From: Dendrobates tinctorius
Taxonomy: Eukaryota
NCBI RefSeq assembly: GCF_039654945.1
Contig: NW_027361688.1
Coordinates: forward strand, 8,680,001-8,744,000
Direction: 5' to 3'
Length of the DNA: 64,000 nt
Position numbers and translations under genes: made by a program. Every line of letters begins with the position of its first letter. Within the stretch, counting starts at the first letter, position 1. Positions 14,074 to 60,141 of the stretch are shown piece after piece. Under the pieces are notes generated by a model, which did no database searches, was not told the origin of the DNA, and saw only the letters and a program-made list of their open reading frames with translations.

Positions 14074-16180
14074 TTAACTCTTCCGCCGATTACCTTGACC
14101 ATGTTTAAGTCTGAGTCACCATACCGGCATATCCTAAAACACGGTGAACCAATGAACTACCATCGACTCTACCTTGGAATATGTTTACTTCTTTCATGCA
14201 GTTTTTTCAAATGTTTTGGAAATACTGTATATTGTTATGGTTATGTGGTCATGTTTGACCTACTACTTGTGGCACAACTAGTACCCGGTGTTCGCATTTC
14301 TATTCCCTTTTGAAAACTTAATAAGGATAAACTTATATACGGTGTATAAAAAAGTCTCCATAGTTGTAACTGTAGGAGCGCTCTCTTAACACATTTAATA
14401 GTCGAATATGACAGACTAGAGATGAGCGGATCAGGCAAACTCCAAATTCACCTATTCTCAGGGATTTTCATAGGAAACTCAATTAGCAATCAAGTCATTC
14501 TCCATGAATTGAATGTTCTTTTTATGTTCTGGGGTCTCTAAAATTATATTTATGTTATAAACATAATAAAAATAAAAAATACTGATCCTCACCTCACCGC
14601 TCGCCTCTCCAGCCCCTCCATTTCTCACCATCACCCGTCCAGTCCTTGTCACATCTCCTTATCTTCCCTGCTGAGCGCTAATTTCTTGAGCCTCTTTGTG
14701 CTAGGCCGGGACTTCCGTCTCTGATGAGGCCCAGCATTTTTTTCACACCTGTTTAAAACTTTTGCATATTACTGTACTAAATCATCTGCTCTCAAAAGTG
14801 CAAGTGGAGTGTGACCACCTCAGCCCTGACGGTGACAACGCCATAATGTGGAAGATGAGAATACCTCTATAATGTCCACTGAACATTTTCTTGATAAATA
14901 ATCCGTTGCGGTTCTGTACATGTTACTTTCCATTTAAGTCAGTGGGAGACAAACGCCATGAATAGAGCATGTGGGGATTTATAAAAAGAAACGTTGGGTA
15001 TAAAGAGTTGTCCACTACTTTTATAATGATCACATATCCTTAGGATAGGTCGCCATTATAATGCCATAATATCATTACAATGTCATTGTACTATGGCCTC
15101 CATAGTGGGCAATGGCCAATAAGACATGGTCCTAATAGAGAGAACAGTAAAGTCAGGAGCTACGACCTGTTCCCAGCCTCCTGAATAAAGAAAACCTTTA
15201 GGAATCGCCAGTTTCCGTGAAGTTTCAGGCAAGATCGGGGGCGGTTGGGATTTGCTGACTCTTCCATGAGTCCGGATCGTCTCTTCTTCTTCTTCTGGCC
15301 CTGGTGCGATGGCTGCCTGTGAGCCCCCTACATCAACGCCTCCAGCCCCCACTATACCACAAGGAGACACGTGACAGAGTAGTAATATTACCGGAGGAGA
15401 GGACAGTTTATTATACCGAGCGGTTACATTAGATATAATACAGTGTGAGGATTACAGGAAAAGGAAAAACACAATCTCCAAAATGATAGAAAACCAGAAA
15501 TATCCCAGAAGTGACCAACACGGGACATAACGACAACCCTTGTCCTGTGAGATAGAAAGGTGGAATAAGGTTGTCACACAAATTATTGTATGATGAGCAG
15601 TTATACATTCTCCTGTTACATTTTATCAATTCCTCACTATGTGCAATATGTATAGGCCGCGTCTCTGCACCCTCGGTCCTATTGTAAGGCCCAGACTGTG
15701 ACTGAGCATCATAGGAAGCTGCCAGTGACTGTATACAGCAATCCTGAGATTATACAGTATATAGTACAAGCGAGCAAGCGACTGCAAGACTGAAAAAGAA
15801 GGATAAACTAAACAAAAGATATAAAAAATATGAACAAAAAACAATTAACATATTTTATCTTCCCAGTTACAATGACAATTTAAACATAAAATATTTCGTA
15901 TTCTCGCGTCCACAAAAATCCAACCTGTTGAAAATATAAAATTATTTCACCCGTACGGTGAAAATCATGAAGCAAAAAAGGAAAGAAATCAAAACTCCAG
16001 ATTTTCTGTTTTTTTTTCCATCACCTCAATTCCCTGAAAAAAAAATCAATCAAAAGCGATCAAAATATTGAATAGCCCCGAAAATATCACCTATAAAACT
16101 ACAGCTCATCATTTAGAAAACAAGCCCTCAAACATAAAACGGATCTCTAAAAAAGGGGGACACAAACCAATTTATTTTCA

Positions 16181-17178: not shown

Positions 17179-18768
17179 TCAGGTGCAGATTCTAATCCAA
17201 GTATCATCAAAAAGTGATGGGAGACCTACACATAATGCAGCATGAAGGGGCTCGGAGAAGGTGGCAGTGAAGGTGTGTAAGTGTCTGATGGGGTCACACA
17301 GCTCATAAAAGGACAACAGCCCGGCCTCATAATCCAGACTTATCCTGACTCTATCACTGGAGATCTTGTCAGGTAACAGGATATCGCGACTGTCATGTTT
17401 CACTAAATACTGACTATCATATTTCCACAAACACCAGGACTTGTTATTATCTCCAATCACTAACTCACTTCCGCTCCTGTCTACACTGGGATAACACATC
17501 CCCACCAACCACCACTCTGATCTACTGATGTCCACATCCCAGTAATGTTGTCCTGAGGTAAATCCCCTCCTGCTCATCACCTGATTATTCTGGAATCTCT
17601 CTGCTGTTTCTGGACGATTCTGCCATACTTCTGTCCAGGCCGCAGTTTTCAGGTTGTCTGATATAAGGAGATTATTACCAGCTGTGGTTACATCCAGTAA
17701 TATGTCTGCAGGACCCTCCACATAGATCCCGCGCCTTATACCTGATATTACGTCACTTAATTTGTGTAATGTGTGTGAGATCACAGCCACATCCAGGTCA
17801 TCTCCATCATGGGGCTGTTTATCATTTCCTCCTGTGTCCTCATCACCTCCCTCCTCCTCAGGATCACACAAGTCACCGGTGTCTAGTTCCAAGACAGTCA
17901 GTGGATCCGTGATGTTACACAGCTCCTCAATGTGTCTCATCTTCCTGGACAGCTTGTCCTTCTTTATTTCCAGCTGATGGATCAGAGCAGACAGTGACAG
18001 TGACTCTTCCTTTTCCTGCCTGGAGATCTCACTCAGGACCTTCTTCTCCAGGTCGTCCACCCGACTCCTGATGTCTGAACACAGGGCAGTGACTCTCTCG
18101 GCTTCTCCAGCTGCTTTTTCTTTAGCTTTTCTCCTGCTCTCCTCTAGACTCCGGACTCTTTCCTCAGTCTCCTCTCTCTTTGTTGTCAGTTTCTGGAGAA
18201 CATTTCTCAGTTTCTCCTTCTTCTTCTCTGAGGCCTCATCCAGCATCTCCACCCGGTGTCCTCGATGTTCTCCTGCCAGACTGCAGGACACACAGATACA
18301 AGCAGCGTCCTCCGTGCAGTAATATTCCAGGATCTTCTTATGGACAGAACATTTCCTTTTCTCCAGATTAGTGCTGGGATCAGATAAGACGTGTTCTGCT
18401 GATTTTCTGTGAGCTCTCAGGTGTTTATCACACAGAGAAGCCTCACAGTGTAGACAGGATTTAACAGCGGGTACCGAAGAGTCCACACAGTAAGTGCAGC
18501 AGATCCCGGTGATCTCATGTTTTTGCTGAGTAATCAGGAAACGTTCTGCGACATTATGGAGATTTATGTTCCTCGTCAGTGCCGGCCGCACCTTAAATCT
18601 TTTTCTGCATTCAGGACAGGAATAAACTCTAGACCCGTCCTGTGTATCCAGCACACGACCAATACAGACCAAGCAGAAGTTGTGTCCACATCTCAGCATT
18701 ACAGGGTCCTTAAAAATAGATAAGCAGATGGAGCAGCGCAGCTCGTCTCTCAGAATAGCAGATGCCAT
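17179..18768 (-). CDS. TRIM25/finTRIM-like E3 ligase (copy 2), 529 aa from the ATG at 18768
   Basis: Same domain set as copy 1; MASAILRDEL aligns with paralog starts; the ORF-track extension to 18807 uses a non-ATG start. Confidence 0.95.
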   Translation of the reverse strand: MASAILRDELRCSICLSIFKDPVMLRCGHNFCLVCIGRVLDTQDGSRVYSCPECRKRFKVRPALTRNINLHNVAERFLITQQKHEITGICCTYCVDSSVPAVKSCLHCEASLCDKHLRAHRKSAEHVLSDPSTNLEKRKCSVHKKILEYYCTEDAACICVSCSLAGEHRGHRVEMLDEASEKKKEKLRNVLQKLTTKREETEERVRSLEESRRKAKEKAAGEAERVTALCSDIRSRVDDLEKKVLSEISRQEKEESLSLSALIHQLEIKKDKLSRKMRHIEELCNITDPLTVLELDTGDLCDPEEEGGDEDTGGNDKQPHDGDDLDVAVISHTLHKLSDVISGIRRGIYVEGPADILLDVTTAGNNLLISDNLKTAAWTEVWQNRPETAERFQNNQVMSRRGFTSGQHYWDVDISRSEWWLVGMCYPSVDRSGSELVIGDNNKSWCLWKYDSQYLVKHDSRDILLPDKISSDRVRISLDYEAGLLSFYELCDPIRHLHTFTATFSEPLHAALCVGLPSLFDDTWIRICT

Positions 18769-19174
18769 GGCTGAGGGAAAAAGGAGGAAACGGAAGAAGG
18801 AAGACAACGGAAGAACGCAAACTGAAAGTAGTGATGTGTCGTTCCTGAACGATCTGATAGGAAGAGTTGGCTCTTTGATGTTAATGAAGGGGGTGGATCA
18901 CCACTGAGAGCTGAGCCAAAAAATTTTTTCCCTGCTGTTTGCTAAGCTTCTTCTGGGGGCTGGGAGGAGTGGAGGAGGAGATTTAAAGCAGTGTATACAA
19001 GTGGGGAATGCTTGACTTGCTATGCAATCTTTCTTAAAGGTACCGCAGATATTAGCTGGTGTGGGGTCACTCAGTACAGGGAGAGTGAATCACCGGACAC
19101 TGCTGCTCAGGGGTACTCACTGCCGCCATGTAATAAAGGTATCACTGAGACACTGAGAAAGCTTCAACTGTCAA

Positions 19175-19804
19175 AGTGCCCCCATAATCAGTCAGGGTCA
19201 GGAGTACACATAACAATACCATAGTGCCCCCATAAGCAGTCAGGGAGTACACATAACAATACCAGAGTGCCCCCATAAGCAGTCAGGGAGTACACATAAC
19301 AATACCAGAGTGCCCCCATAAGCAGTCAGGGAGTACACATAACAATACCAGAGTGCCCCAATAAGCAGTCAGGGAGTACACATAACAATACCAGAGTGCC
19401 CCAATAAGCAGTCAGGGAGTACACATAACAATACCAGAGTGCCCCAATAAGCAGTCAGGGAGTACACATAACAATACCAGAGTGCCCCCATAAGCAGTCA
19501 GGGAGTACACATAACAATACCAGAGTGCCCCCATAAGCAGTCAGGGAGTACACATACCAATACCAGAGTGCCGCCATAAGCAGTAGGGGAGTACACATAA
19601 GAATACAAGAGCGCCCTCATAAGCAGTCAGGGAGTACACATAACAATACCAGAGTGCCCCCATAAGCAGTCAGGGAGTACACATAACAATACCAGAGTGC
19701 CCCCATAAGCAGTCAGGGAGTACACATACCAATACCAGAGTGCCGCCATAAGCAGTAGGGGAGTACACATAAGAATACAAGAGCGCCCTCATAAGCAGTC
19801 AGGG
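19175..19804. repeat. 43-bp minisatellite upstream of copy 2 (continues at 23159-23401 and 24197-24242)
   Basis: Unit GAGTACACATAACAATACCAGAGTGCCCCCATAAGCAGTCAGG; array split by two insertions. Confidence 0.95.
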
Positions 19805-21869: not shown

Positions 21870-22760
21870 GATCCTGCACCCTCCTGTGTCTCACATTCTG
21901 CCCCTTCCTGTGTCTTACTGCCACATTCTGCCCAGTGCCTCACATTCTGCCCCTTCCTGTGTCTTACTGCCACATTCTGCCCCAGTGCCTCACATTCTGC
22001 CACCTCCTGTGTCTCACTGTCACATTCTGCCCCGTGTCCAATTTGCCCCCTCCTGTGTCTCACTGTCACATTCTGCCATGTCTGCATTCTGCCCCCATCA
22101 TGTCCAGCAATCTGCCCCCATCATGTCCAGCAATCTGCCCCATCATGTCCAGCATTCTGCCCCATCATGTCCAGCATTCTGCCCCATCATGTCCAGCAAT
22201 CTGCCTCCATCATGTCCAGCAATCTGCCCCATCATGTCCAGCATTCTGCCCCCATTATGTCAGCAATCTGCCCCATCATGTCCAGCATTCTGCCCCCATC
22301 ATGTCCAGCATTCTGCCCCATCATGTCCAGCATTCTGCCCCATCATGTCCAGCATTCTGCCCCCATCATGTCCAGCATTCTGCCCCCATGCCTGCATTCT
22401 GCCCCCATCATATCCAGCAATCTGCCCCATTATGTCCAGCAATCTGCCCCATCATGTCCAGCATTCTGCCCCATTATGTCCAGCATTCTGCCCCATCATT
22501 TCCAGCATTGTGCCCCATCATCTCCAGCATTCTGCCCCATTATGTCCAGCATTCTGCCCCATCATGTCCAGCATTGTGCCCCATCATCTCCAGCATTCTG
22601 CCCCCATTAGGTCCAGCATTCTGCCCCCCCCATTATGTCCAGCAATCTGCCCCATTATGTCCAACAATCTGCCCCATTATGTCCAGCATTCTGCCCCATC
22701 ATGTCCAGCATTGTGCCCCATCATCTCCAGCATTCTGCCCCCATTATGTCTGCAATCTGC
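21870..22760. repeat. Internal tandem repeats of the hAT element (~39-bp units, then ~22-23-bp units)
   Basis: Units CACATTCTGCCCCTTCCTGTGTCTTACTGC... and CTGCCCCATCATGTCCAGCATT. Confidence 0.9.
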
Positions 22761-23158
22761 CCGGGGCCCCCCGGATCGCCGCTTTCAATTAAAAAAAAAA
22801 AAGTTATTCCTAACCTGGCTACGCTCCAGTGGCGACGCTCGCGCTCCCTCCAGTCCACGCTGCTGAAGCGTGCATTCGCCGGCGACTGACAGTGACGTCA
22901 GATGCCGGCGATGGGCGCACTGCAGCCGACGTCAGCTGCCAGCCTCTGTTTGGCTGGCGGCTGTTAACTATTGATGTGCGGGCCGAAGGGACCGCATGTC
23001 AATAGCGTTCAGCTGCCGCAGTGCAGCGCCGCTAAGGGCCCGGTTTAGTGTGCCGGTAGGGGCCCGGTGAGCAGATGAGACTGGGCCCGATGCGGGCCCC
23101 CTCAGCCCACCGGGCCCCATACGTCTGTCAGGGCAGTAATGCCCTGATGGCGGCCCTG

Positions 23159-23401
23159 AGTCAGGGAGTGCACATAACAATACAAAAGCGCCCCCATAAG
23201 CAGACGTGGAGTACACATAACAATACCAGAGTGACCCCATAAGCAGTCAGGGAGTACACATAACAATTCCAAAGCGCCCTCATAAGCAGTCAGGGAGGAC
23301 ACATAACAATACCAAAGTGCCCTCGTAAGCAGTCAGGGAGTACACATAACAATATCAGAGTGCCCCCATAAGCAGTCAGGGAGTACGCATAACAATACAG
23401 G
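23159..23401. repeat. Continuation of the 43-bp minisatellite
   Basis: Same unit as 19175-19804. Confidence 0.9.
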
Positions 23402-29023: not shown

Positions 29024-30625
29024 TTAACTTCTAATCCTTAACCAGCTATCTACATAACATCCTTTGACCTTTCTCCAAAATACACAAACAGCAACATGAA
29101 GGGGCTCAGAGAAGGTGGCAGTGAAGGTGTGTAAGTGTCTGATTGGGTTACACAACTCATAAAAGGACAACTGACCGGCCTCATAATCCAGACAGATCCT
29201 GAATCTATCACTAGAAATTTTGTCAGGCAAAAGAATCTCTTTCTTGTCATGTCTCATAAAATAGTGATTATTGTGTGTTCTGCACAAACTCCAAGACTTA
29301 TTACTATTTCCAGCGTATGACTGACGGCCTCTTCTGTCTATACTGGGGTAACACATTCCCGCCCTCCCACATCCCGATCTACTGATCTCCACATCCCAGT
29401 AATGTCGTCCTGAAGTAAATCCCCTCCTGCTCATCACCTGGTAATCCTGGAATCTCTCTGCTGTTTTCGGACGTTTCTGCTTCTCGTCTGTCCAGGTTGC
29501 AGTTTTCAGGTCATCTGATATAAGGAGATTATTAGCAGCTGTGGTTACATCCAGTAATATGTCTGCAGGACCCTCCACATAGATCCCGCTCCTTATACCT
29601 GATATTACGTCACATAATGTGTGTAATGTGTGTGAGATCACAGCCACATCCAGGTCATCTCCATCATGGGGCTGTTTATCATGTTCCCCTGGGTCCTCAT
29701 CACCTCCCTCCTCCTCAGGATCACACAAGTAACCGGTGTCTGATTCCTGTAAGACAGTCAGTGGATCCGTCATGTTACACAGCTCCTCAATGTGTCTCAT
29801 CTTCCTGGACAGCTCGTCCTTCTTTATTTCCAGTTGCTTGGTAAGAGTAGACAATGACTCTTCCTTTTCCTGCCTGGAGATCTCACTCAGGACGTTCTTC
29901 TCCAGGTCATCCAGCTGTCTCCTAATGTCTATAAACAGGGCCTTGACTCTCTCGGCTTCTCCAGCTGCCATTTTTTGAACTTTTCTCCTGTGATCCTTCA
30001 GAGTCTTGACTTTCTCCTCTGTTCTTTCTCTCTTTATGGTCAGTATATGAAGAATATTTCTCAGTTTGTTCTTTTTCTTCTCAGAGGCCTCATCCAGCAT
30101 CTCCACTTGATGTTCCTCATGCTTTCCAACCAAACTACAGGACACACAGATACAAACAGCGTCCTCAGTGCAGTAATATTCCAGGATTTTATTATGGACA
30201 GAACATTTTCTTTTCTCCAGAGAAGTGCTGGGATCAGATAAGACATGTTGTGTTGACTTGCTGTGAACTTTCAGGTGTTTATCACACAGAGAAGCCTCAC
30301 AGTGTAGACAGGATCTAACAGCAGGTACAGGAGAGTCCACACAGTAAGTGCAGCAGATCCCGGTGATCTCCTCTTGTTCTGGCTGAGTAATCAGGAAACG
30401 TTCTGCGACATTATATAGATTTATGTTCCTCATCAGTGCCGGCCGCTCCCAAAACTCTTCTCTGCATTCTGGGCAGGAGTAAACTCCCGACTTCTCCTGT
30501 GTATCCAGCACACGATCAATACAGACCCGACAGAAGTTGTGTCCACATCTCAGTATTACAGGATCCTTAAAAACAGATAAACAGATGGAGCAGAGCAGCT
30601 CGTCTCTCAGATCAGCAGTCGCCAT
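29024..30625 (-). CDS. TRIM25/finTRIM-like E3 ligase (copy 3), 533 aa
   Basis: Intact RING-Bbox-Bbox-CC-PRY/SPRY ORF; paralog of copies 1, 2 and 4. Confidence 0.95.
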   Translation of the reverse strand: MATADLRDELLCSICLSVFKDPVILRCGHNFCRVCIDRVLDTQEKSGVYSCPECREEFWERPALMRNINLYNVAERFLITQPEQEEITGICCTYCVDSPVPAVRSCLHCEASLCDKHLKVHSKSTQHVLSDPSTSLEKRKCSVHNKILEYYCTEDAVCICVSCSLVGKHEEHQVEMLDEASEKKKNKLRNILHILTIKRERTEEKVKTLKDHRRKVQKMAAGEAERVKALFIDIRRQLDDLEKNVLSEISRQEKEESLSTLTKQLEIKKDELSRKMRHIEELCNMTDPLTVLQESDTGYLCDPEEEGGDEDPGEHDKQPHDGDDLDVAVISHTLHTLCDVISGIRSGIYVEGPADILLDVTTAANNLLISDDLKTATWTDEKQKRPKTAERFQDYQVMSRRGFTSGRHYWDVEISRSGCGRAGMCYPSIDRRGRQSYAGNSNKSWSLCRTHNNHYFMRHDKKEILLPDKISSDRFRICLDYEAGQLSFYELCNPIRHLHTFTATFSEPLHVAVCVFWRKVKGCYVDSWLRIRS

Positions 30626-31440: not shown

Positions 31441-31621
31441 TAAAACTGAACTTTTTGGCCACAAAGGTAAACGCTATGTCTGGCGCCAAACCAACACACT
31501 CATCACCCCAAGAACACCATCCCCACAATGAAAAATGGTGGTGGTAGCATCATGCTGCAGGGATGTTTTAGAAGCAGGGACAAGGAAAATGGTCTGAGTC
31601 AATGGGAAGATGTATGGTGTG
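31441..31621 (+). mobile_element. Tc1 transposase relic, left piece (interrupted by the hAT element)
   Basis: Encodes [15 protein letters not shown]...[19 protein letters not shown]; resumes at 40893. Confidence 0.85.
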
Positions 31622-31783
31622 TAGAGTTGAGCGAAACGGGTCGAAAAAATTAAAAAGTCGCCGACTTTTGGCAAAGTCGGGTTTCATGAAACGAAACCCG
31701 ACCCTAGGATGAGGTCGGCCACGAGGTTGGCGACTTACGCGCCAAAGTCGCGTTTCAAAAGTTTGTTTTGCGCTCTTTTTCAG

Positions 31784-31930
31784 CCAATCAGGATCCACGG
31801 ACACTGTGGGCAACGTGATGACCTAGGCACGGGTCACCACCATCTTTCAGAAGGGCATGCAAGTGATTGGCTTGCTTTGGTGGGCGTCACAGGGGGTATA
31901 AAAGGGCGTGCACGCCGACCGCCATCTTAC
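31784..31930 (+). promoter_or_regulatory. Pol II promoter of the hAT transposase
   Basis: CCAAT (~31784), inverted CCAAT (ATTGG ~31866), TATAAAA at 31897-31903, YY1-like GCCATCTT at ~31921. Confidence 0.65.
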
Positions 31931-32189
31931 TTCTGCCGATCTTAGTATAGGGAGAGGTTGCTGCTGATTCTGTAGGGAGAGCGTTAGGCAGGGAAGAAGA
32001 CAAAAGAACTGCTTCTGCTGCTAGCGATTTGGCCTGCACAACACACAAGTCACTGTGTGTGCAGTGCAAGGGGAGGCTATATTGTGGTGTATCAGTGGTG
32101 TTGGTTGTTGGGCTGCCTTCTAAGGCTTCCTGACACGCTGGCATTGCTGTTTACCCACTGCTCCGCAAACTGCTTTTTTAAAAGCAATC

Positions 32190-34455
32190 CAATCTCCCTT
32201 ATCCTCTAGTCACTTTGGTCACAGCTGTGCCATCGAGCGTGTCACATAGCGCTCAGATATCAGTGGGCCTCACACAATCCACAAGTGTCCAGTGTCCAAA
32301 AGTGTACGCAGAGATTCAAAATCTCCATTATCCTCTCGTCACTTTGGTCACAGGCAGCTGTGCCATCGAGCGTGTCACATAGCGCTCAGATATCAGTGGG
32401 CCTCACACAATCCACAAGTGTCCAGTGTCCAAAAGTGTACGCAGAGATTCAAAATCTCCATTATCCTCTCGTCACTTTGGTCACAGGCAGCTGTGCCATC
32501 GAGCGTGTCACATAGCGCTCAGATATCAGTGGGCCTCACACAATCCACAAGTGTCCAGTGTCCAAAAGTGTACGCAGAGATTCAAAATCTCCATTATCCT
32601 CTCGTCACTTTGGTCACAGGCAGCTGTGCCATCGAGCGTGTCACATAGCGCTCAGATATCAGTGGGCCTCACACAATCCACAAGTGTCCAGTGTCCAAAA
32701 GTGTACGCAGAGATTCAAAATCTCCATTATCCTCTCGTCACTTTGGTCACAGGCAGCTGTGCCATCGAGCGTGTCACATAGCGCTCAGATATCAGTGGGC
32801 CTCACACAATCTACAAGTGTCCAGTGTCCAAAAGTGTACGCAGAGATTCAAAATCTCCATTATCCTCTCGTCACTTTGGTCACAGGCAGCTGTGCCATCG
32901 AGCGTGTCACATAGCGCTCAGATATCAGTGGGCCTCACACAATCCACAAGTGTCCAGTGTCCAAAAGTGTACGCAGATATTCAAAATCTCCATTATCCTC
33001 TCGTCACTTTGGTCACAGGCAGCTGTGCCATCGAGCGTGTCACATAGCGCTCAGATATCAGTGGGCCTCACACAATCCACAAGTGTCCAGTGTCCAAAAG
33101 TGTACGCAGAGATTCAAAATCTCCATTATCCTCTCGTCACTTTGGTCACAGGCAGCTGTGCCATCGAGCGTGTCACATAGCGCTCAGATATCAGTGGGCC
33201 TCACACAATCTACAAGTGTCCAGTGTCCAAAAGTGTACGCAGAGATTCAAAATCTCCATTATCCTCTCGTCACTTTGGTCACAGGCAGCTGTGCCATCGA
33301 GCGTGTCACATAGCGCTCAGATATCAGTGGGCCTCACACAATCTACAAGTGTCCAGTGTCCAAAAGTGTACGCAGAGATTCAAAATCTCCATTATCCTCT
33401 CGTCACTTTGGTCACAGGCAGCTGTGCCATCGAGCGTGTCACATAGCGCTCAGATATCAGTGGGCCTCACACAATCCACAAGTGTCCAGTGTCCAAAAGT
33501 GTACGCAGAGATTCAAAATCTCCATTATCCTCTCGTCACTTTGGTCACAGGCAGCTGTGTCATCGAGCGTGTCACATAGCGCTCAGATATCAGTGGGCCT
33601 CACACAATCCACAAGTGTCCAGTGTCCAAAAGTGTACGCAGAGATTCAAAATCTCCATTATCCTCTCGTCACTTTGGTCACAGGCAGCTGTGCCATCGAG
33701 CGTGTCACATAGCGCTCAGATATCAGTGGGCCTCACACAATCTACAAGTGTCCAGTGTCCAAAAGTGTACGCAGAGATTCAAAATCTCCATTATCCTCTC
33801 GTCACTTTGGTCACAGGCAGCTGTGCCATCGAGCGTGTCACATAGCGCTCAGATATCAGTGGGCCTCACACAATCTACAAGTGTCCAGTGTCCAAAAGTG
33901 TACGCAGAGATTCAAAATCTCCATTATCCTCTCGTCACTTTGGTCACAGGCAGCTGTGCCATCGAGCGTGTCACATAGCGCTCAGATATCAGTGGGCCTC
34001 ACACAATCCACAAGTGTCCAGTGTCCAAAAGTGTACGCAGAGATTCAAAATCTCCATTATCCTCTCGTCACTTTGGTCACAGGCAGCTGTGCCATCGAGC
34101 GTGTCACATAGCGCTCAGATATCAGTGGGCCTCACACAATCTACAAGTGTCCAGTGTCCAAAAGTGTACGCAGAGATTCAAAATCTCCATTATCCTTTCG
34201 TCACTTTGGTCACAGGCAGCTGTGCCATCGAGAGTGTCACATAGCGCTCAGATATCAGTGGGCCTCACACAATCCACAAGTGTCCAGTGTCCAAAAGTGT
34301 ACGCAGAGATTCAAAATCTCCATTATCCTCTCGTCACTTTGGTCACAGGCAGCTGTGCCATCGAGCGTGTCACATAGCGCTAAGATATCAGTGGGCCTCA
34401 CACAATCCAAAAGTGTCCACTGTCCACAAGTGTGTGCAGAAATTCTAAATCTCCC
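32190..34455. repeat. 133-bp tandem array, ~17 near-identical copies, 5' of the transposase
   Basis: Exact 133-bp periodicity (also visible in the ORF track spacing); only scattered single-base variants. Confidence 0.97.
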
Positions 34456-34531
34456 CTGTCCTATAGACACCTTTTACCTTGTTTTACATTACTATATAGT
34501 TTGTTGGATTTTGTCTACATTTCTACCAAAA

Positions 34532-37500
34532 ATGAGGAAGGCTGGTGGAAGAGGCCGTGGAATTGGGCGGGGGTTGGCAGCTGGTAATGATGGTGTTGGT
34601 GGTGGATCTGATGGTAGTGGCAAGAGCAAAATAGGACCGAATGCAGGAGGTGCTGACCCTGCGTCATCGTCTGGCTACATAAGGCCTCGAACGCTTAGTT
34701 TTCTAGGAGTTGGCAAACCGCTTTTAAAGGCAGAGCATCAGGAAAAAGTTTTGTCTTACATTGCTGACTCAGCCTCCAGCTCTATCGCCTCCTCTTCTTC
34801 AGTTGTAAAAAGTAAAAGCACTGAGTCGTCATTGGAGGCTCATGTTCATGAACCACACCTTTCCTTGTGTCCTTCACCCCAACCAAGATTGAAGGATGAC
34901 GCAGGCCATACTACTGATTACTCCATGGAGCTGTTTTCACATACCATGCCTGGATTATCAAGTCAAATGGTGAATTACCCAGGCCAAGATGAATCTGACA
35001 TGGAGTGCACTGATGCACAGCCGCTGATGGATGATTCTGCTGGTACATTCACTCAGAGCACTACATTGTCCTCGCAGTGTACAGAGCCAGATTTTGACCC
35101 TGATGAGACTCAGGTGCCCCTTCCCGCACACTATACCACCATACACGGTGACACAGAGAAAGGTGCACATGACATAGAAGAGGAGGTGATGGATGACCCA
35201 GTTGTTGACCCAGATTGGCATCCATTGGGGGAAGAGGGTGCTGCTTCCAATAGCTCAGATGAGGAGCATCCACAGCAGACATCGACATCGCAACAGCTGT
35301 TATCTGGCAGGCCCGGAGCACTCCAAAGACAGGTTCCAAACATCAAAAGAGTTGCTGGACAGCTTGTCCAGAGGGTCAAAAGATCACAGCGTGCTAGGCC
35401 GCAAAATGTATGCCAAAGTAGGAAGAGTGCAGTGTGGCACTTTTTTGAACAAAATCCTCATGATCAGGCCAAGGTTATCTGTAAGAAGTGCGCAAAGACC
35501 TTTAGCCGAGGGAAAAATCTGAAAAATTTGAATACCAGTTGCATGCTTAGACATTTAACCAGCATGCACTTGCAAGCGTGGACACAACACCAAACCTCAA
35601 GTGCCACATGTGCAACTGATCACAACGAAGGTAGTCAGCAACGCTACATTGTTTCCCCCACTGTCAGCACACCGGTTAGCACAGCAGCAAATGTTGAGGT
35701 GTCGTTGCAAGGCCACAGCAGTCAGGGAATCCCACTGTTATATCAACGAAAGACTGATTCTAGGCCATCAGAAAGAACACCAACTCCATCACCATCATCA
35801 ACCCTCTCTCAGTCCGCCCTGTCCACCGCTACTTCCACCATATGCAGCTCTCAAGTCCAGCTCACCCTCCCAGACACTATGAGTAGGTCAAGAAAGTACT
35901 CAGTCTCTCATCCGCGTACACTGGGTTTGAACGCCCACATTGCCAAACTAATCTCGTTTGAGATGATGCCCTTTCGGTTGGTGGAAAGCACAGCTTTCCG
36001 CGAACTCATGGCCTATGCAGTACCATGCTATGACCTACCCAGTCGCCACTTCTTCTCTCGCAAAGCCATCCCAGCCCTCCACCATCATGTGAAAGACCGC
36101 ATTGTCCATGCACTCAAGCAGTCAGTGAGCGGAAAGGTGCACCTCACAACTGATGCATGGTCCAGTCGGCATGGCCAGGGCCGTTACGTGTCCATCACTG
36201 CGCACTGGGTTAATGTGGTGGATGCAGGGTCCACAGGGGACAGCGGTGGTGGGACAGTGCTGCCTAGCCCATGGTCTAGGAAACAGTTGGCTGTAGGCGT
36301 TCGACCCTCCTCCTCCTCCTCCAGAAGCGACAGCTCGTCCACAGAGCGCAGTCGTACGAGCACTCCATCTGCAGCTGCCACTGTTGCACACGATGTGTCC
36401 CCCTATCGAGCAGCTAGTGGAAAGCGTCAGCAGGCTGTGTTGCAGATGATGTGTTTGGGCGACAGACACACCGCCGAGGTGCTGGCCGAGTACTTGAAGC
36501 GACAAACTGAGTCATGGCTGGGCAGTGTACATCTTGAGGCAGGCAAGGTAGTTAGTGATAACGGCCGTAATTTTGTGGCAGCCATAGCCCTTTCAAAACT
36601 CAGCCACATACCTTGCTTGGCTCACACCTTGAACCTGGTGGTGCAGTGCTTCCTCAAAAATTATCTGGAGTTAACAGCCCTGCTCCAGAAGGTGCGAAGA
36701 CTGTGCGCGCACATCCGCCGGTCACCTGTACACTCCGTTCGTATGCAGAAGCTGCAGCGATTGCTCCACCTTCCCAACCACCGCCTCATTATCGACATTG
36801 CAACAAGGTGGAACTCCACCCTGCACATGGTGGAGCGGCTGTGCGAGCAGAGGCAGGCCATAATGCATTTGTGGGAGGATACACGGCCAGGCACTTTGAG
36901 AGCAGACATGGAGTTGACAGGCGTGCAGTGGTCGAAGCTGAAAGACCTTTGTAAAGTCCTTCAGTGTTTTGAGGAATGCACACGGCTGGTAAGCGCAGAC
37001 GACGCCATCCTAAGCATGAGCATCCCACTTATGCGTCTGCTCATGCAAACTTTGACGCACCTTAAGGAGCAGGCGTCTGCAGCCAATGTTGATGAGGAGG
37101 AAGAGGAGGAGGGAATCCTTGATGACATTCAGCCATTGTCTGCTCAGGGACCTCTCCTGGACGAGGTGGAGGAAGAAGAGGAGGAGGAGGAGGAGGATGA
37201 TGGGGATGATTACTTAGGGGAGGAGGATGCATCTCGTGGGGCAAGTGAAAATGTTGGCGTGGCAAGGTCTGGTACAGGGTTTGTGCGTGACTGGAGGGTT
37301 GTGGATTTGCCAGAAAGTGCTCCTCCACCCAGCACTCGCAGTGCATCATTGACACCGGGAACATTGGCCCACATGTCAGATTATGCCTTGCGGATCCTAA
37401 AAAGGGACCCCCGCATTGCCAAAATGATGAACAATGACGACTACTGGTTGGCCAGCATCCTGGATCCACGCTATAAAGGCAAATTACAAAACATCATGCC

Positions 37501-38071
37501 ACAGGAGAACCTTGACCTAATATTGGCTAATAAACAAGCAACTCTGGTAAATCGGTTGCTTGAGGCATTCCCAGCACACAGCAGCGGTGATGGTTCTCAC
37601 ACGAGCCGTACGGGCCGGGGGCAGCTTGGCAGAGGTGTTCGTGGTGCACACAGCAGAAGTGGCGTTGGAGACAGGGGTTTCATGACAATGTTGTGGACTG
37701 ATTTTTCAAATACCGCTCACACAACTGGTAATACTGCATCGATGGAAAGTGACAGGAGACAGCAGTTGTCAACTATGGTTACAAACTACTTTTCCTCCCA
37801 TATCGATGTTCTCCCACACAGGTCATTCCCCTTTGACTATTGGGCCGCTAAACTGGACACCTGGCCTGAATTGGCCCAATATGCCTTACAGGAGCTCGCT
37901 TGCCCAGCTGCAAGTGTGCTATCGGAAAGAGTCTTCAGTGCAGCTGGATCAATCCTGACAGAAAAAAGGACCCGTCTGTCAACCCAAAATGTGGATGATC
38001 TAACCTTCATTAAAATGAACCACGCATGGGTTTCCAAGGATTTTGTCCCACCTTCCCCTGATGACACATAG
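34532..38071 (+). CDS. hAT transposase (BED zinc finger, DDE/RNase-H core, dimerisation domain; ZBED-like), 1179 aa, intronless
   Basis: BED finger VWHFF...CKKC...MLRHLTSMH; catalytic LTTDAW, VVSDNG, CLAH, TRWNS, SERVFS; first ATG at 34532. Confidence 0.93.
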   Translation: MRKAGGRGRGIGRGLAAGNDGVGGGSDGSGKSKIGPNAGGADPASSSGYIRPRTLSFLGVGKPLLKAEHQEKVLSYIADSASSSIASSSSVVKSKSTESSLEAHVHEPHLSLCPSPQPRLKDDAGHTTDYSMELFSHTMPGLSSQMVNYPGQDESDMECTDAQPLMDDSAGTFTQSTTLSSQCTEPDFDPDETQVPLPAHYTTIHGDTEKGAHDIEEEVMDDPVVDPDWHPLGEEGAASNSSDEEHPQQTSTSQQLLSGRPGALQRQVPNIKRVAGQLVQRVKRSQRARPQNVCQSRKSAVWHFFEQNPHDQAKVICKKCAKTFSRGKNLKNLNTSCMLRHLTSMHLQAWTQHQTSSATCATDHNEGSQQRYIVSPTVSTPVSTAANVEVSLQGHSSQGIPLLYQRKTDSRPSERTPTPSPSSTLSQSALSTATSTICSSQVQLTLPDTMSRSRKYSVSHPRTLGLNAHIAKLISFEMMPFRLVESTAFRELMAYAVPCYDLPSRHFFSRKAIPALHHHVKDRIVHALKQSVSGKVHLTTDAWSSRHGQGRYVSITAHWVNVVDAGSTGDSGGGTVLPSPWSRKQLAVGVRPSSSSSRSDSSSTERSRTSTPSAAATVAHDVSPYRAASGKRQQAVLQMMCLGDRHTAEVLAEYLKRQTESWLGSVHLEAGKVVSDNGRNFVAAIALSKLSHIPCLAHTLNLVVQCFLKNYLELTALLQKVRRLCAHIRRSPVHSVRMQKLQRLLHLPNHRLIIDIATRWNSTLHMVERLCEQRQAIMHLWEDTRPGTLRADMELTGVQWSKLKDLCKVLQCFEECTRLVSADDAILSMSIPLMRLLMQTLTHLKEQASAANVDEEEEEEGILDDIQPLSAQGPLLDEVEEEEEEEEEDDGDDYLGEEDASRGASENVGVARSGTGFVRDWRVVDLPESAPPPSTRSASLTPGTLAHMSDYALRILKRDPRIAKMMNNDDYWLASILDPRYKGKLQNIMPQENLDLILANKQATLVNRLLEAFPAHSSGDGSHTSRTGRGQLGRGVRGAHSRSGVGDRGFMTMLWTDFSNTAHTTGNTASMESDRRQQLSTMVTNYFSSHIDVLPHRSFPFDYWAAKLDTWPELAQYALQELACPAASVLSERVFSAAGSILTEKRTRLSTQNVDDLTFIKMNHAWVSKDFVPPSPDDT

Positions 38072-38269
38072 GGTGACAGAAAAATGGCTTGCTTTGGTCC
38101 ACCTCTTCCTGGTACTTCACCTATTTCGCCTTTTGCATCAGTTGAATGTCCAACAACAACATATGCCACTTTCTAAAACTCCCTAACTGTGCTGCCTCCC
38201 CCCCCATGGCCGGGGTCACCACCTAGCGCACGACACCGTGCGAGTGCCGTTGCCCTGAACAGGTGGGTA

Positions 38270-38413
38270 GGCCGACTCTTGGGCGCGGGCACTGGCACAG
38301 GGTCCATCATAGTGCAATCAAGTGTCTCTGACGGCGGTGGTGCACACCCGCCGTCAGACACACCGCTGTACTATGAGGGGCCCAGTGCCAGTACCGACGC
38401 CCACGAGTGGGCC
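38270..38413 (+). other. Long imperfect RNA hairpin 3' of the transposase stop codon
   Basis: Nested stems ACTCTTGGGCG/CGCCCACGAGT, ACTGGCAC/GTGCCAGT, TCATAGTGCA/TGTACTATGA, TCTGACGGCGG/CCGCCGTCAGA. Confidence 0.75.
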
Positions 38414-38490
38414 CCCCTTGCTTGGCCAGGGCCCCAGCATTTGCAATCTTTACCTCTCCCTGCTCCTCCGCTGTGTAATCTGGGCCGTCA

Positions 38491-40062
38491 AATCCATACT
38501 GTGCCTGACACCGTCTGAGCCTGCCTCCTGATGTATAGACATATATTTTGAATGTGTACGCTATCCATACATGTTATCCGGGGATACGTTACCCCTTCTA
38601 AACTTTGTGCAATGACGTGCAATCCATACTGGGCCTAACACCGTCTGAGCCTGCCTCATGCTGTATAGACATATATTTTGAATGTGTACGCTATCCATAC
38701 ATGTTATCCGGGGATACAGTACCCCTTCTAACCTTTGTGCAATGACGTGCAATCCATACTGGGCCTAACACCGTCTGAGCCTGCCTCATGCTGTATAGAC
38801 ATATATTTTGAATGTGTACGCTATCCATACATGTTATCCGGCGATACGGTACCCCTTCTAACCTTTGTGCAATGACGTGCAATCCATACTGGGCCTAACA
38901 CCGTCTGAGCCTGCCTCATGCTGTATAGACATATATTTTGAATGTGTACGCTATCCATACATGTTATCCGGGGATACGTTACCCTTCTAAACTTTGTGCA
39001 ATGACGTGCAATCCATACTGGGCCTAACACCGTCTGAGCCTGCCTCATGCTGTATAGACATATATTTTGAATGTGTACGCTATCCATACATGTTATCCGG
39101 GGATACGGTACCCTTTCTAACCTTTGTGCAATGACGTGCAATCCATACTGGGCCTAACACCGTCTGAGCCTGCCTCATGCTGTATAGACATATATTTTGA
39201 ATGTGTACGCTATCCATACATGTTATCCGGGGATACGGTACCCCTTCTAACCTTTGTGCAATGATGTGCAATCCATACTGGGCCTAACACCGTCTGAGCC
39301 TGCCTCATGCTGTATAGACATATATTTTGAATGTGTACGCTATCCATACATGTTATCCGGGGATACGGTACCCTTTCTAACCTTTGTGCAATGACGTGCA
39401 ATCCATACTGGGCCTAACACCGTCTGAGCCTGCCTCATGCTGTATAGACATATATTTTGAATGTGTACGCTATCCATACATGTTATCCGGGGATACGTTA
39501 CCCCTTCTAAACTTTGTGCAATGACGTGCAATCCATACTGGGCCTAACACCGTCTGAGCCTGCCTCATGCTGTATAGACATATATTTTGAATGTGTACGC
39601 TATCCATACATGTTATCCGGGGATACGGTACCCTTTCTAACCTTTGTGCAATGACGTGCAATCCATACTGGGCCTAACACCGTCTGAGCCTGCCTCATGC
39701 TGTATAGACATATATTTTGAATGTGTACGCTATCCATACATGTTATCCGGGGATACGGTACCCCTTCTAACCTTTGTGCAATGACGTGCAATCCATACTG
39801 GGCCTAACACCGTCTGAGCCTGCCTCATGCTGTATAGACATATATTTTGAAAGTGTACGCTATCCATACATGTTATCCGGGGATACGGTACCCCTTCTAA
39901 CCTTTGTGCAATGACGTGCAATCCATACTGGGCCTAACACCGTCTGAGCCTGCCTCATGCTGTATAGACATATATTTTGAATGTGTACGCTATCCATACA
40001 TGTTATCCAGGGATACGGTACCCTTTCTAACCTTTGTGCAATCACGTGCAATCCATACTGGG
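38491..40062. repeat. 130-bp tandem array, ~12 copies, 3' of the transposase
   Basis: Unit begins GGGCCTAACACCGTCTGAGCCTGCCTCATGCTG; 130-bp periodicity with one 129-bp unit. Confidence 0.97.
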
Positions 40063-40892
40063 CGTGAGAACGGCTGGCGAGCTGTTAAGCAAGGATTCCC
40101 TAGCGAGGAGACTTATTTGATTGTTTTCTATGTTGGGACAGCAATTTTTGGGGAGCACTATACTCTGGAGAATGATAGATGGGGCCCACCATACACTGAA
40201 ACATTCCAAAGGTGGACATCAGACACTGGAGCAGCATTTACAGGGCCCATTATACACTAGAGCATTAGAAATGGGGCCCATTATGTTTGGAGCATTATTT
40301 GGGCCCATAAGACAGTGGAGCTTCATCCATGGGGACCAACATATACTGTAGCATTATGTGGAGCTCATCATATACTGTTTCAAACATTATATGGGACCAA
40401 TGATTTTGTATGGAGAAATAGATGGGCCTCGTCATGAGATGTAAAAAGTGAGGTATTTTTCATTGTACTATACCGCTATTTCTCTGCCGTATCGGAGCAT
40501 GATGAGTTGTGGTATGTGTTAAAGGGTCGCTCTTTCGCCCAGGGCACATGAAAACCTGCAGCCAGCCCTCCCCCCCCCCCACAAATTTAGCCAAATAACC
40601 CCCATTTTTCAGTGCGTAACTTGTATTATGAAGTTAATTAAGGTTGACAAGCTTAAGTAAGAAGAATTGATGCTTTTGGCATTCAAATGGGCACTGTAGG
40701 TGTGTTTCCTGTCCTCCTCTCACTGCCGACTTTTATTCCCCATTGACTTACATTGGGTTTCGTGTTTCGGGACGACCCCGACTTTTCCCTATAATCGGAC
40801 GATCTTGCTCGACCCGACTTTTGGAAAAGTCGGGTTTCGCGAAACGAAACGCGACCCTAAAAAAGCAAAAGTCGCTCAACTCTAATGGTGTG

Positions 40893-49591: not shown

Positions 49592-51138
49592 TAGAGAGAA
49601 GGAAATAAGTATTCGATCCCTCGCTGATTTTGTAAGTTTGCCCACTGACAAAGACATGAACAGTCTATAATTTTAATGGTAGGTTAATTTTAATATTGAG
49701 AGATAGAATATCAAAAGTATAATCCAGAAAATCACATTGTATAAATTATATACATTTATTGGCATTTTGCAGTGAGAAATAAGTATTTGATCCCCTACCA
49801 ACCATTAAGAGTTCTGGCTGCAACAGACCAGTTAGATGCTCCTATTAAAGACACCTGTCTTACATAGTCACCTTTATAAAAAGACTCCTGTCCACAGACT
49901 CAATTAATCAGTCAGAGTCTAACCCCCCACAACATGGGCAAGACCAAAGAGCTTTATAAGGATATCAGGGACAAGATCATAGACCTGCACAAAGCTGGAA
50001 AGGGCTATAAAACCATAAGTAAGACGCTGGCTTAGAAGGAGAGTGTTGGTGCAATAGTAAGAAAATATGGAAGAAATACAAAATGACAGACAATCAACAT
50101 CGATCTGGGGCACCATGCAAAATCTCACCTCGTGGGGTATCCTTGATCATAAGGAAGGTGACAGATCAGTCTAAAACTACATGGGGGAACTTGTTAATGA
50201 TCTCAAGGCAGCTGGGACCACAGTCACCAAGGAGACCATTGGTAACACATTACGCCATAAAGGTTTACAATCCTGCAGTGTCCACAAGGTCCCCCTGCTC
50301 AAGAAGGCACATGTGCAGGCCCATCTGAAGTTTGCCAATGAACACCTGGATGATTCTGTGAGTGGTTGGGAGAAGGTGCTGTGGTCAGATGAGACAAAAA
50401 TTGAGGTCTTTGGCATTAGTTCAACTTGGAGGAAGAGAAATGCTGCCTATGACCCAAAGAACGCCATCCCCACTGTCAAACATGGAGGTGGAAACATTAT
50501 GTTTTGGGGGTGTTTCTCTGCTAAGGCTACAAGACTGCTTCACCGCATCAATGGAAGAATGTATGGAGCCATGTACCGTAAAATCCTGATTGACAACCTC
50601 CTTCCCTCTGCCAGGACATTAAAAATGGGTCCTGGCTGGGTCTTCCAGCAAGACGATGACCCAAAACATACAGCCAACGCAACAAAGGAGTGGCTCAAAA
50701 GAAGCACATTAAGGTCATGGAGTGGCCTAGCCAAGTCTCGAGACCTTATTCCCATAGAAATCTTATGGAGGGAGTTGAAGCTCCGAGTTGCTAAGCGACA
50801 GTCACAAAATCTTAATGATTTAGAGATGATCTGCAAAGAGGAGTGGGCCAAAATTCCTCCTATTCCTCCTGACATGTGCGCAAACCTCATCATCAACGAC
50901 ACAAAACGTCTGACTGCTGTGCTTGCCAACAAAGGTTTTGCCACCAAGTATTAAGTCTTGTTTGCCAGAGGGATCAAATACTTATTTCTCACTGCAAAAT
51001 GCTAATAAATTTATATAATTTATACAATGTGATTTTCTGGATTTTATTTTTGATATTCTATATCTCAATGTTGACATTAACCTACCCTTAAAATTTTAGA
51101 CTGTTCAGCAAGGGATCAAATACTTATTTCCTACACTG
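49592..51138 (+). mobile_element. Tc1 element of IR/DR type, inactive (left end approximate)
   Basis: Long TIRs containing the direct repeat AAATAAGTATTTGATCCC; transposase remnant inside. Confidence 0.88.
49934..50954 (+). pseudogene. Tc1 transposase pseudogene (stops and frameshifts)
   Basis: MGKTKEL start; [25 protein letters not shown]. Confidence 0.88.
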
Positions 51139-52649: not shown

Positions 52650-55382
52650 TATTATATTTTATTTATCCTCTATATGGCATCTTTTTTTCTTTCCTCACAT
52701 TTATTTCTACAGGTTGCACAGCACCAAAAAACTACATCATAAACACAAAATCCTTGTCCAGGCGCTAAGTACACAATAGACCCTGGCTACTTGTACACTG
52801 AGCTAGTCCCAGTCCGATCAAACTAAACGGCTATTGACCATAGCATCCAGTGATACTTGCAGTTTGGTGCCCACTCTCTGTGCAGTCTCTTCTCAGAGAG
52901 ATTCTGGCTTCTCTCTTTCTTTATCTCCAACACAATCCAGTCTTCTTAGCTTCCCCCAGCTGACTTCGACTGTGGTGAACAACTAGCCTGGCTATATACA
53001 GAGCTAGCCAGGTGACCTAATCAGAACCTGTAGTGCTAGGATTTAACCATAGACTACCTGGCTTTCCTACAGTCCTTAGAGTTCCAAAAACAGCATATAC
53101 ATCTACTTATGTCAAATATTACATTACTGTCTTTACATCTGAGCAAAAAGGTTCACAGGGTTTTTGTACCCCATCCATGTCGATACTCCGAGGCAGTCAC
53201 AAAGTGCCTTCATGCTGAACCCCAGGCATAAAAAAATTAACAGTCCGGGTTCACAGAAGCATCTGCAAAATCATATGTCTTCACTTCACCTTTGCGTATT
53301 TAACAAAATGATCAAATCAACAATAGTTCGGGGCCCAGCAAATCCGCTGCTCTTTTGATTAGCTGGTTGGGTTTGCAGGCGCAAAGATGACATTGTGCCT
53401 ACAAATCAGAGGAGGCGCCGGGGATTCTAACAGAAAGTAGATCTGCAGGGATCCTGTCTGGTGGCCACGGACAACTAACGTGGCCTGTAGACCAAAGTCC
53501 TGTGAATCAATTTGCTCATCTCTAAGGTTTACATGTTCAAGAACCAGGCCATGGTTTATTTTTTTCCCCTCTTTTACTTTTTCCTTCTCAAATTCAAAGA
53601 GCCATAACTTTTTTATTTTTCATTTGTCATAGCTTTATGAGGGTTTTTCATTTTTTTCTAAATAATGTAATGAAAAAAAAAAAGAGTAGGAAAAAAAATT
53701 CAAGAAGGTGGAAACGGTGAAAAAAAAACCTAAAATGTTATTTTATTGTTTTTTAATTTTTTTTAAATCATTCATTGTATGGTAAAAATTACCTGGTAAT
53801 GTGATCTCTCAGGTAAGTGATTATGGTGATTCCACAAATATAGTTTTTTTATATTAATTTAGTGGCTAAAACAGATTGAAAATACTGTAAAAAAAAAAAA
53901 CTTTTTTCCTCCATTTTCAGAAAGCCGCAACTTTTTTTTATTTTTCTGTTGATGGCGCTGTTTGAGGGCTTGATTTGTGTTTGCATACCAAGCTGTAGAT
54001 TTTACTCATATTATTTTGAGGTACATACAGTATTTTAATAATTTTTATTGCATTTTTTTGACAGGAGTGGCAACGAAAAAGCAACATTTCTGGCATTTAG
54101 GTTTTTTTCTATTCTATATTTTGATAGATTAAACTTTTATCAGTGTGTCAATACCAAGATGATTTTTTATTACCTTATTTATTAATTTTTAAAGGGGTGA
54201 TTCATTTGCTTATATTTTTTTTTTTTTTAAACAAAACTTTATTTTGTCTTTTAGTCCCATTAGGAGACTTGAACCTGTGATAGTAAGATGGCATATACTG
54301 TAGACTGCAATACTAATGTATTGCAGTATATACTGAGGCATGATAGCTCATATAAGTATCTGAAAACAACCCCCTCGCCGCATATGAGGGCCCCAGCACG
54401 GCTCCACAGTTACATCCATATGTACCAAACATTTAAAAATGACGCTGCTGAACTTGTTTTTTTTGGTGTTTTTATCTCCTTTAGGTTTCGAGAACCAGAA
54501 AAAACACATCTAGAAAACAAATTTGTGACATCACCGCTCATCATTCTGAACTCTTGCTCTGCTGTCTTTGAGACCAACGGCTGTGAAGTGCGGTAACCTA
54601 ACTGACAACACTGCAGTTTACAGGCAGGTTCATACGTAGTACAGCGTGAGAACCAGCAGTGGCTGGTTATTGGGCCCTTCCCAGGCTAATAAGACCAGCC
54701 CCCACCTGTCTGATTTACCTTAGCTGGCTATCAATTATAGAGAGGAACCCCACGTAATTTGTTAAAATTATTTAATTATTAGCTAAATAAATGTACAGTA
54801 AGTTACACACGTAAAGCAGTGATTATATATCTCACGGACATCTAACTATTCCATTTATCTATATTTATATCTGTATATAAGATTGCTTTATTAGTTTTGT
54901 AAACTAGCTTTAAATTACATAGAGAATTACTATATGTAAAACATGATGTTAAAAGCGCATTTCATACGGCTGTCATACGAATGATAAGTGAATGAAAAAA
55001 CGAAGATGTGAGCGAACACTTGTACCGTGAGCACATTCCGGCAGAGTTTGTAACTCTTTTATCCCTCTTTTTCTGACCTCTTCTCAGCTAATTTATGAGC
55101 ATAGACCAAATCAGAGATAAACAGGGAAACAAAAAGCCTGTAAAAGCCAAACCGACGAAAATTCTTAATGAAATCCTCATGTAAAACATGATTTTTAACC
55201 CTAAATACAAGCATTTAAGTAGAATGAAAAATGCCCCCAAAGGTGGACAACCCCCGTAGCTTAACCTTAAAGTTTATTTTCATTATAAATAGTTAAAATT
55301 TCAAAGGTCTATTAAAAGGAAGGATCTACAATTTACTTATTAAGATTATCAATGAATGTTATTGTTTACAGCTTGGTGCTTA

Positions 55383-60001: not shown

Positions 60002-60141
60002 NNNNNNNNNNNNNNNNNNNNNNNNNNNNNNNNNNNNNNNNNNNNNNNNNNNNNNNNNNNNNNNNNNNNNNNNNNNNNNNNNNNNNNNNNNNNNNNNNNN
60101 NNNNNNNNNNNNNNNNNNNNNNNNNNNNNNNNNNNNNNNNN
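60002..60141. other. Assembly gap (140 N)
   Basis: Run of N. Confidence 1.

Follow-up and report, generated by a model that had tools for sequence, protein, structure and literature searches.

A hAT transposon of Dendrobates tinctorius with unrelated tandem arrays on both sides of an intact transposase gene, and a predicted AUG-free leader that holds the upstream array

The usual picture of a DNA transposon is a compact one: a transposase gene plus cis sequence amounting to a few hundred base pairs. Ac of maize and Hermes of the housefly, two hAT elements, combine an 8-bp target site duplication (TSD) and short terminal inverted repeats (TIRs) with a transposase that has a BED-type DNA-binding region, a DDE/RNase-H core with a CxxH motif and a tryptophan, and a C-terminal hAT dimerisation domain; they measure 2.7–4.6 kb and carry no kilobase internal arrays. 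Their subterminal hexamers are clustered in about 150–200 bp per end, and for Ac about 200 bp per end suffices, the AAACGG hexamers there binding the transposase (PMC3260210). Among frogs, the non-autonomous DNA transposons miDNA4-Xt and Xstir of Xenopus and FEDoR of Rana temporaria carry tandem arrays, and reviews find array carriers dominated by non-autonomous elements (PMC9659126, PMC12054243). In mouse L1, a variable number of tandem ~200-bp monomers in the untranslated region at the 5' end (5' UTR) upstream of ORF1 serves as the promoter, and daughter copies inherit these arrays, which are linked to expression (PMC9022269, PMC6454616). Here we describe a hAT element in a 64-kb stretch of the Dendrobates tinctorius genome (contig NW_027361688.1, positions 8,680,001–8,744,000 of the forward strand; hereafter the window), in which the transposase gene is bracketed by an upstream array, A, and a downstream array, B. 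It is probable, although considerable doubt remains, that a promoter belonging to the element drives transcription through array A and that the array stays in the message as a long, AUG-free, folded 5' UTR, array B being a passenger.

The element occupies 31622–40884 of the window (9,263 bp), and its two arrays together make up 3,837 bp, or 41% of it. It has the features listed above for Ac and Hermes, from the 8-bp TSD and the clustered subterminal hexamers to the dimerisation domain, but at 9.3 kb it is larger, and its intronless transposase is longer (1,179 aa), with acidic and Ser-rich inserts. An earlier interpretation of the letters alone (the sequence-only reading) had held that hAT elements usually measure 2.5–5 kb and lack kilobase arrays; this is roughly right for the classic elements, but it overlooks the array-bearing non-autonomous DNA transposons of frogs. 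Like miDNA4-Xt, Xstir and FEDoR, the present element is a frog DNA transposon bounded by TIRs and TSDs that carries, and would spread, internal tandem repeats. Those elements, however, are non-coding and have a single array between their ends, whereas here an intact transposase makes the element autonomous and is flanked by two arrays of unrelated sequence. The closest analogue in apparent mode of working seems to be the mouse L1 5' UTR, which likewise places a tandem array directly 5' of an open reading frame (ORF) in an autonomous mobile element; L1, however, is a retrotransposon, and in the frog element the predicted TATA promoter is distinct from the array and lies ahead of it, the units being without promoter motifs. 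In the literature searched, which did not cover Repbase or Dfam, neither an autonomous hAT element with its transposase between two kilobase arrays nor a DNA transposon whose repeat leader lacks AUGs was described. The report on the D. tinctorius genome gives hAT elements as 3.91% of the assembly and does not mention arrays (PMC11152451).

Predicted promoter, leader and upstream array

The features that bear on the expression of the transposase are, in order:

31784–31933, plus strand: predicted Pol II promoter (motif positions, from sequence only)
31929–34531, plus strand: predicted 2.6-kb 5' leader with no sense-strand ATG (ATG-free interval scan)
32191–34454, plus strand: array A, 17 units of 133 bp and a decayed partial 18th unit (Tandem Repeats Finder, TRF: period 133, 17.1 copies, 98% matches)
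34532–38071, plus strand: transposase ORF, 1,179 aa, intronless (ATG at 34532, stop codon at 38069–38071, no internal stop)
38491–40063, plus strand: array B, 12 units of 130 bp (TRF: period 130, 12.1 copies, 97% matches)

The sequence-only reading had counted about 17 units of 133 bp upstream and about 12 of 130 bp downstream, amounting to some 40% of the element, and TRF agrees with these figures. Ahead of array A, a CCAAT box at 31784 and an inverted CCAAT at 31866 are followed by TATAAAA at 31897–31903, by GCCATCTT, which has a YY1-like core, at 31921, and by an Inr-like TTACTTC at 31927–31933. The predicted transcription start is the Inr-like A at 31929, which lies 32 bp past the TATA box, the correct spacing. 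At the other end of the leader, 34532 is the true start codon, because five Ranitomeya gene models begin at the same methionine (MRK.GGRGRG in all of them).

Between these two points the sense strand contains no ATG. The last ATG before the start codon is at 31857, ahead of the TATA box, and the ATG-free interval 31857–34532 (2,675 bp) is by far the longest in the window. For statistics the array was collapsed to one unit, leaving a leader of 511 non-redundant nucleotides, which was compared with dinucleotide-preserving shuffles. The collapsed leader has 0 ATG where 8.0 are expected, and none of 20,000 shuffles was ATG-free (p < 5e-5). The 378 nt that are not repeated are free of ATG on their own (p = 0.0008), as is the single unit A (p = 0.045), and of all trinucleotides the collapsed leader lacks just ATG and CGG. 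No consensus splice donor (GTRAG or AGGTRA) was found between the TATA box and the ATG; with no such sign of splicing, we infer that array A would be retained in the message. In addition, the RNA of unit A folds more stably than its shuffles in the sense orientation (z −4.1 for one unit, −6.7 for the dimer), with lower values for the antisense strand (z −1.9 and −2.6). The leader with array A is thus strongly structured only relative to shuffles, its absolute value standing at the upper end of the range of the ORF. The ATG-free stretch, the missing splice donor and the sense RNA folding are the grounds for reading array A as part of a leader.

In mechanistic terms, array A would lie between the CCAAT/TATA promoter and the conserved start codon, in a leader kept AUG-free, and ribosomes would have to scan a long folded 5' UTR containing it. 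The length and structure of this leader would plausibly damp or tune the translation of the transposase. An expression rheostat had been among the functions suggested for both arrays by the sequence-only reading; of the two arrays, only the upstream one has a plausible part in expression, on the ATG depletion, the absence of a donor and the sense fold, any rheostat effect being hypothetical. The more far-reaching proposal, that selection acts on array A as a structured, AUG-free leader of variable copy number by which the element tunes its transposase output, is doubtful. If it were true, array A would be the DNA-transposon counterpart of the mouse L1 monomers, acting on translation and not on transcription, and gain or loss of units would set a different activity for each daughter copy.

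Array B has a different character. Each of its units contains four ATGs, and neither strand gave an RNA fold signal (z +1.5 and +0.7). No functional signature was seen in it, and array B most likely rides along as a passenger that the element tolerates in its 3' non-coding part.

Rfam models applied at gathering score over the window returned no family, and no 18S relic was found in the element. A sub-threshold match to the histone stem-loop at 32166–32210 (Rfam E 0.14) was treated as chance.

Ends, candidate binding hexamer and transposase

The termini and the remaining features of the element are as follows:

31614–31621, no strand: left TSD ATGGTGTG (identical 8-mer at 40885–40892)
31622–31634, plus strand: left TIR TAGAGTTGAGCGA, 13 bp (exact reverse complement at 40872–40884)
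31635–31760, no strand: left subterminal region with five AAGTCG/CGACTT hexamers (at 31655, 31662, 31674, 31731 and 31745; CpG observed/expected 1.78)
38270–38413, no strand: GC-rich imperfect palindrome, 77% over 144 bp (inverted repeat in self-BLAST), just 3' of the transposase stop codon
40150–40440, no strand: decayed short repeat with a GGGCCCAYYATAYACTG...AGCATT-like motif (read from the sequence; below TRF threshold)
40720–40871, no strand: right subterminal region with five AAGTCG/CGACTT hexamers (at 40727, 40779, 40815, 40827 and 40869; CpG observed/expected 1.54)
40872–40884, minus strand: right TIR, the exact reverse complement of the left TIR
40885–40892, no strand: right TSD ATGGTGTG, the same 8-mer as the left TSD

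The 8-bp TSD ATGGTGTG flanks both ends; compared with nTnnnnAn, the preference of hAT elements, it agrees at position 2 and not at position 7. The 13-bp TIR begins with TAGAG and has the form of a short hAT TIR (about 10–25 bp, YARNG start), and the window contains two exact matches to it, which are the element's own ends. Perfect TIRs and an 8-bp TSD were therefore found where the sequence-only reading had placed the boundaries of an intact hAT element. Downstream of the stop codon, the palindrome, array B, the decayed short repeat and the right subterminal region follow one another in this order. The core hairpin of the palindrome (38322–38363) has a predicted RNA fold of −35 kcal/mol (z −5.6), and TRF run at score 30 over the decayed repeat reported no repeat. 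Self-comparison of the element by BLAST revealed no second transposase N-terminus and no internal duplication, and neither blastn nor tblastn detected a further fragment of its family in the rest of the window.

Ten copies of the hexamer AAGTCG/CGACTT are present in the element, five of them within 31654–31750 and the other five within 40727–40875. All ten thus fall in the terminal ~130–160 bp, and the 9-kb interior, both arrays included, has none. The two subterminal regions have in common a 46-bp palindromic block (31661–31706, reappearing at 40814–40859), and their CpG observed/expected ratio is 1.5–1.8 compared with 0.3–0.7 elsewhere. AAGTCG is therefore a candidate transposase-binding motif in a layout that is classic for hAT elements. 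The cis needs for cut-and-paste would all lie in the terminal ~150 bp per end, in the TIRs and the clustered AAGTCG, much as in Ac with its AAACGG. Such a confinement to the ends would leave the interior free for long non-coding DNA. The arrays had also been proposed as a platform for binding of the transposase; with every AAGTCG in the terminal ~150 bp and not one in the arrays, this proposal is not supported, and the arrays do not look like extra binding platforms, although another motif is possible.

The uninterrupted 1,179-aa BED-DDE transposase named by the sequence-only reading was borne out in its ORF, its domains and its catalytic motifs. Pfam models identified zf-BED (PF02892) at aa 299–346 (E 1.8e-11) and the dimerisation domain Dimer_Tnp_hAT (PF05699) at aa 1093–1162 (E 1.1e-11; 44.8 bits, cut-off 21.4), and the C-terminus matches structures of the Hermes transposase (E 1.5e-13). 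A profile built from the transposase and four Ranitomeya homologues (five sequences) matches the catalytic core of Hermes at 132–294 (E 4.6e-6) and the BED structure of ZBED2, 2djr (E 3.2e-6). In the pairwise alignment, TTDAW, VSDNGRN, CLAH and TRWNST of this protein stand opposite TIDLW, VTDRGAN, CSSH and TRWNST of Hermes. The candidate catalytic residues are D541, D676 and E1132, the last within SERVFS inside the PF05699 region, together with C695-H698 (CxxH) and W760; we take the first three to be the equivalents of Hermes D180, D248 and E572. Judged by its sequence, the element is a member of the hAT superfamily, in which all testable defining features of an autonomous element were found. 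It is structurally complete and young and could be active, because its ends are perfect, its ORF is intact and the catalytic residues are present; it is probably still competent for transposition. The suggestion that the element may be active thus holds as a possibility.

Origin of the arrays and alternative explanations

Units A and B are unrelated, their best local alignment being a 12-mer (z = 1.7 against shuffles), which agrees with the earlier description of the arrays as distinct. Neither unit has homology to the decayed tail repeat at 40150–40440, and neither occurs in the window outside the element; the suggestion in the sequence-only reading that the element may seed satellite DNA is hypothetical. 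Interior units of the arrays differ from the consensus at 0–2 sites. At the edges, unit A17 differs at 8 sites (6.0%), unit B01 at 6 sites (4.6%) and unit A01 at 6 aligned positions, made up of 2 substitutions and a 4-bp deletion, and the partial 18th unit of array A is still more decayed than A17. Homogeneous interiors with diverged edges are the pattern expected if unequal exchange had homogenised the arrays over time. In array A, units 5, 8, 9, 12, 13 and 15 have in common a variant at unit position 94, and its presence in scattered units points to duplication of multi-unit blocks. Slippage or unequal exchange would have turned two unrelated internal segments into the arrays, which would have been carried along at each transposition.

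The edges also speak to the age of the arrays. Stops are created by 4.0% of the possible substitutions in the transposase ORF, and the intactness of the ORF bounds neutral divergence after insertion at 2.1% or less on substitutions alone, and at about 0.7% or less if indels run at one tenth of the substitution rate. Because the edge divergence (4.6–6%) is larger than this bound, the arrays most likely predate this insertion and travelled along with it. Both arrays were most likely inherited with the element rather than arising by accident at this locus, and such inheritance would, as we infer, extend to the family. In the sequence-only reading the arrays were a built-in module of the element; what stands of this is that they are probably inherited and that the upstream one is probably related to expression, while the binding platform is not supported.

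Tandem repeats are also frequent around the element, with at least eight other tandem arrays in the window. Other minisatellites lie at 10962–11932, 19197–19804, 22077–22762, 23159–23398 and 61864–62778, with 43-, 22- and 30/60-bp units and 74–94% matches, and the 43-bp unit of the array at 19197 reappears at 23159. These nearby minisatellites indicate that the formation of tandem repeats is common in the region and not peculiar to the hAT element.

Several other explanations have to be weighed against the retained leader. If array A worked as the monomers of mouse L1 do, each 133-bp unit would drive or boost transcription and the number of units would set its level. The position of the array 5' of the ORF and its tandem layout mirror the L1 5' UTR monomers (PMC9022269, PMC6454616), unit A holds a GCCAT core resembling GCCATCTT at the predicted start site, and freedom from ATG would be needed under this explanation as well; on the other hand, the YY1-like match of unit A departs from the consensus after CAT, a motif-level test of the unit found no TATA, CCAAT or Inr match, and a complete conventional promoter is already predicted ahead of the array, so that monomers with promoter function are unlikely, if worth keeping in mind. 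Array A could also lie in an intron of the 5' UTR and be removed from the mRNA, which would make its content irrelevant to translation. Introns often interrupt long leaders, and a decent 3' splice-site candidate, a pyrimidine tract with TAG, is present at 34466, directly past the array, but the lack of a GTRAG or AGGTRA donor between the TATA box and the ATG speaks against it, and it would leave unexplained the ATG depletion, both that of the unit (p = 0.045) and that of the leader as a whole; we consider an intron decidedly unlikely. A neutral history, in which both arrays are passengers and the ATG-free leader is chance amplified through repetition, gains from the ease with which minisatellites form here, as the other arrays of the window show, from array B, which is free of any constraint signal, and from the modest probability attached to one ATG-free unit. 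It fails to account for the ATG-free state of the non-repeated 378 nt and of the collapsed leader, and for ATG and CGG being the sole missing trinucleotides, and we judge it improbable.

The symmetrical flanking of the ORF by the arrays, their similar unit lengths (133 and 130 bp) and internal inverted repeats in unit A that could bind a dimer would suit platforms for the transposase, or chromatin boundary modules, required for transposition. The hexamer clustered at the termini is, however, missing from both arrays, the two units have no common sequence, and the hAT elements that have been studied need just ~200 bp per end (PMC3260210); a role of this kind is hardly credible. It is also very improbable that the arrays expanded only here after insertion, or that their copy number is an assembly artefact. 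A single copy was examined, which would allow for either, but the edge units have diverged beyond the age bound set by the ORF, and the interspersed unit variants are hard to square with an array that had been collapsed or invented. HiFi reads of >10 kb went into the published D. tinctorius assembly (PMC11152451), and arrays of 1.6–2.3 kb are easily spanned by single reads of this length, if the window stems from that assembly.

The preferred reading, in which array A is retained in an AUG-free leader, also has points of its own against it. The promoter and the start site are predictions from sequence motifs, and a weak non-consensus donor could still splice array A out. At about −135 kcal/mol per 400 nt, the leader falls, in absolute stability, inside the span of windows in the ORF (−81 to −152). 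Inside the element, neither of the canonical poly(A) signals, AATAAA and ATTAAA, was found 3' of the stop codon, the sole variant signal being AATAGA at 40417. Furthermore, the analysis covers one copy of the element, that of this locus, and the argument from edge divergence is moderate: were two lineages to share the divergence, the values would come near the looser bound.

Relatives, genomic neighbourhood and significance

Protein word-index searches with the whole ORF, with the N-terminal 350 aa, and with the translated array joined to the N-terminus had Ranitomeya models as their sole hits, without any contig of D. tinctorius or Logan. These relatives are multi-copy gene models of Ranitomeya variabilis and R. 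imitator, 'ZBED4/6-like' or unnamed, with 55–70% identity. Models P0001–P0013 belong to the same multi-copy transposase family and have the same start, MRK.GGRGRG, but differ in being annotated as host genes or in being chimeric. Across P0001–P0015, transposase copies are labelled as host genes ('ZBED4-like', 'ZBED6-like'), and some of the models are fused to parts of tetraspanin, peptidase M14, serine deaminase or reverse transcriptase, which are likely annotation chimeras. One R. imitator model, P0013 (277 aa over 3,283 bp), includes peptides that repeat exactly and derive from the ~2.7 kb ahead of that same start codon. This is a weak hint at repeats in the same upstream position in another genus; the upstream peptide of P0013 showed no homology to the leader or unit A of this element. 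Metagenome scans with the unit A DNA pattern and with protein-derived patterns gave no matches.

The window also contains a tandem cluster of intronless TRIM-type genes on the minus strand, at 2365–3969, 17179–18807, 29024–30625 and 57944–59170. Their ORFs encode RING, B-box, coiled coil and PRY/SPRY (533–542 aa), the fourth ending after PRY (408 aa). The hAT element lies 997 bp upstream of the start codon of the third gene (30625), head to head with it. A Tc1/mariner remnant at 50181–50954 has an ORF with a Tc3-type HTH and a DDE_3 transposase domain. TAGAGATGAGCG-like termini at 14417–14429 (plus strand) and 53512–53524 (minus strand), with 2 mismatches to the TIR of the element, may be ends of other hAT-type elements; they have no subterminal similarity to this one. 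After a run of 140 N (60002–60141) comes a degenerate simple repeat, rich in AG and 1.3 kb long (60160–61490).

The element described here is an autonomous vertebrate hAT transposon of which 41% is tandem array, with a 2.6-kb AUG-free repeat leader between the predicted promoter and the start codon. Elements of this kind would scatter kilobase 'satellite' arrays through euchromatin, and annotation readily mistakes them for ZBED-like host genes, as it has in Ranitomeya. With unit number varied in a reporter, the element would offer a tractable system for asking how a transposon sets its own dose. Our data suggest that the DNA transposons of amphibians with large genomes may include some whose long regulatory leaders can be compared with the monomer arrays of mouse L1.

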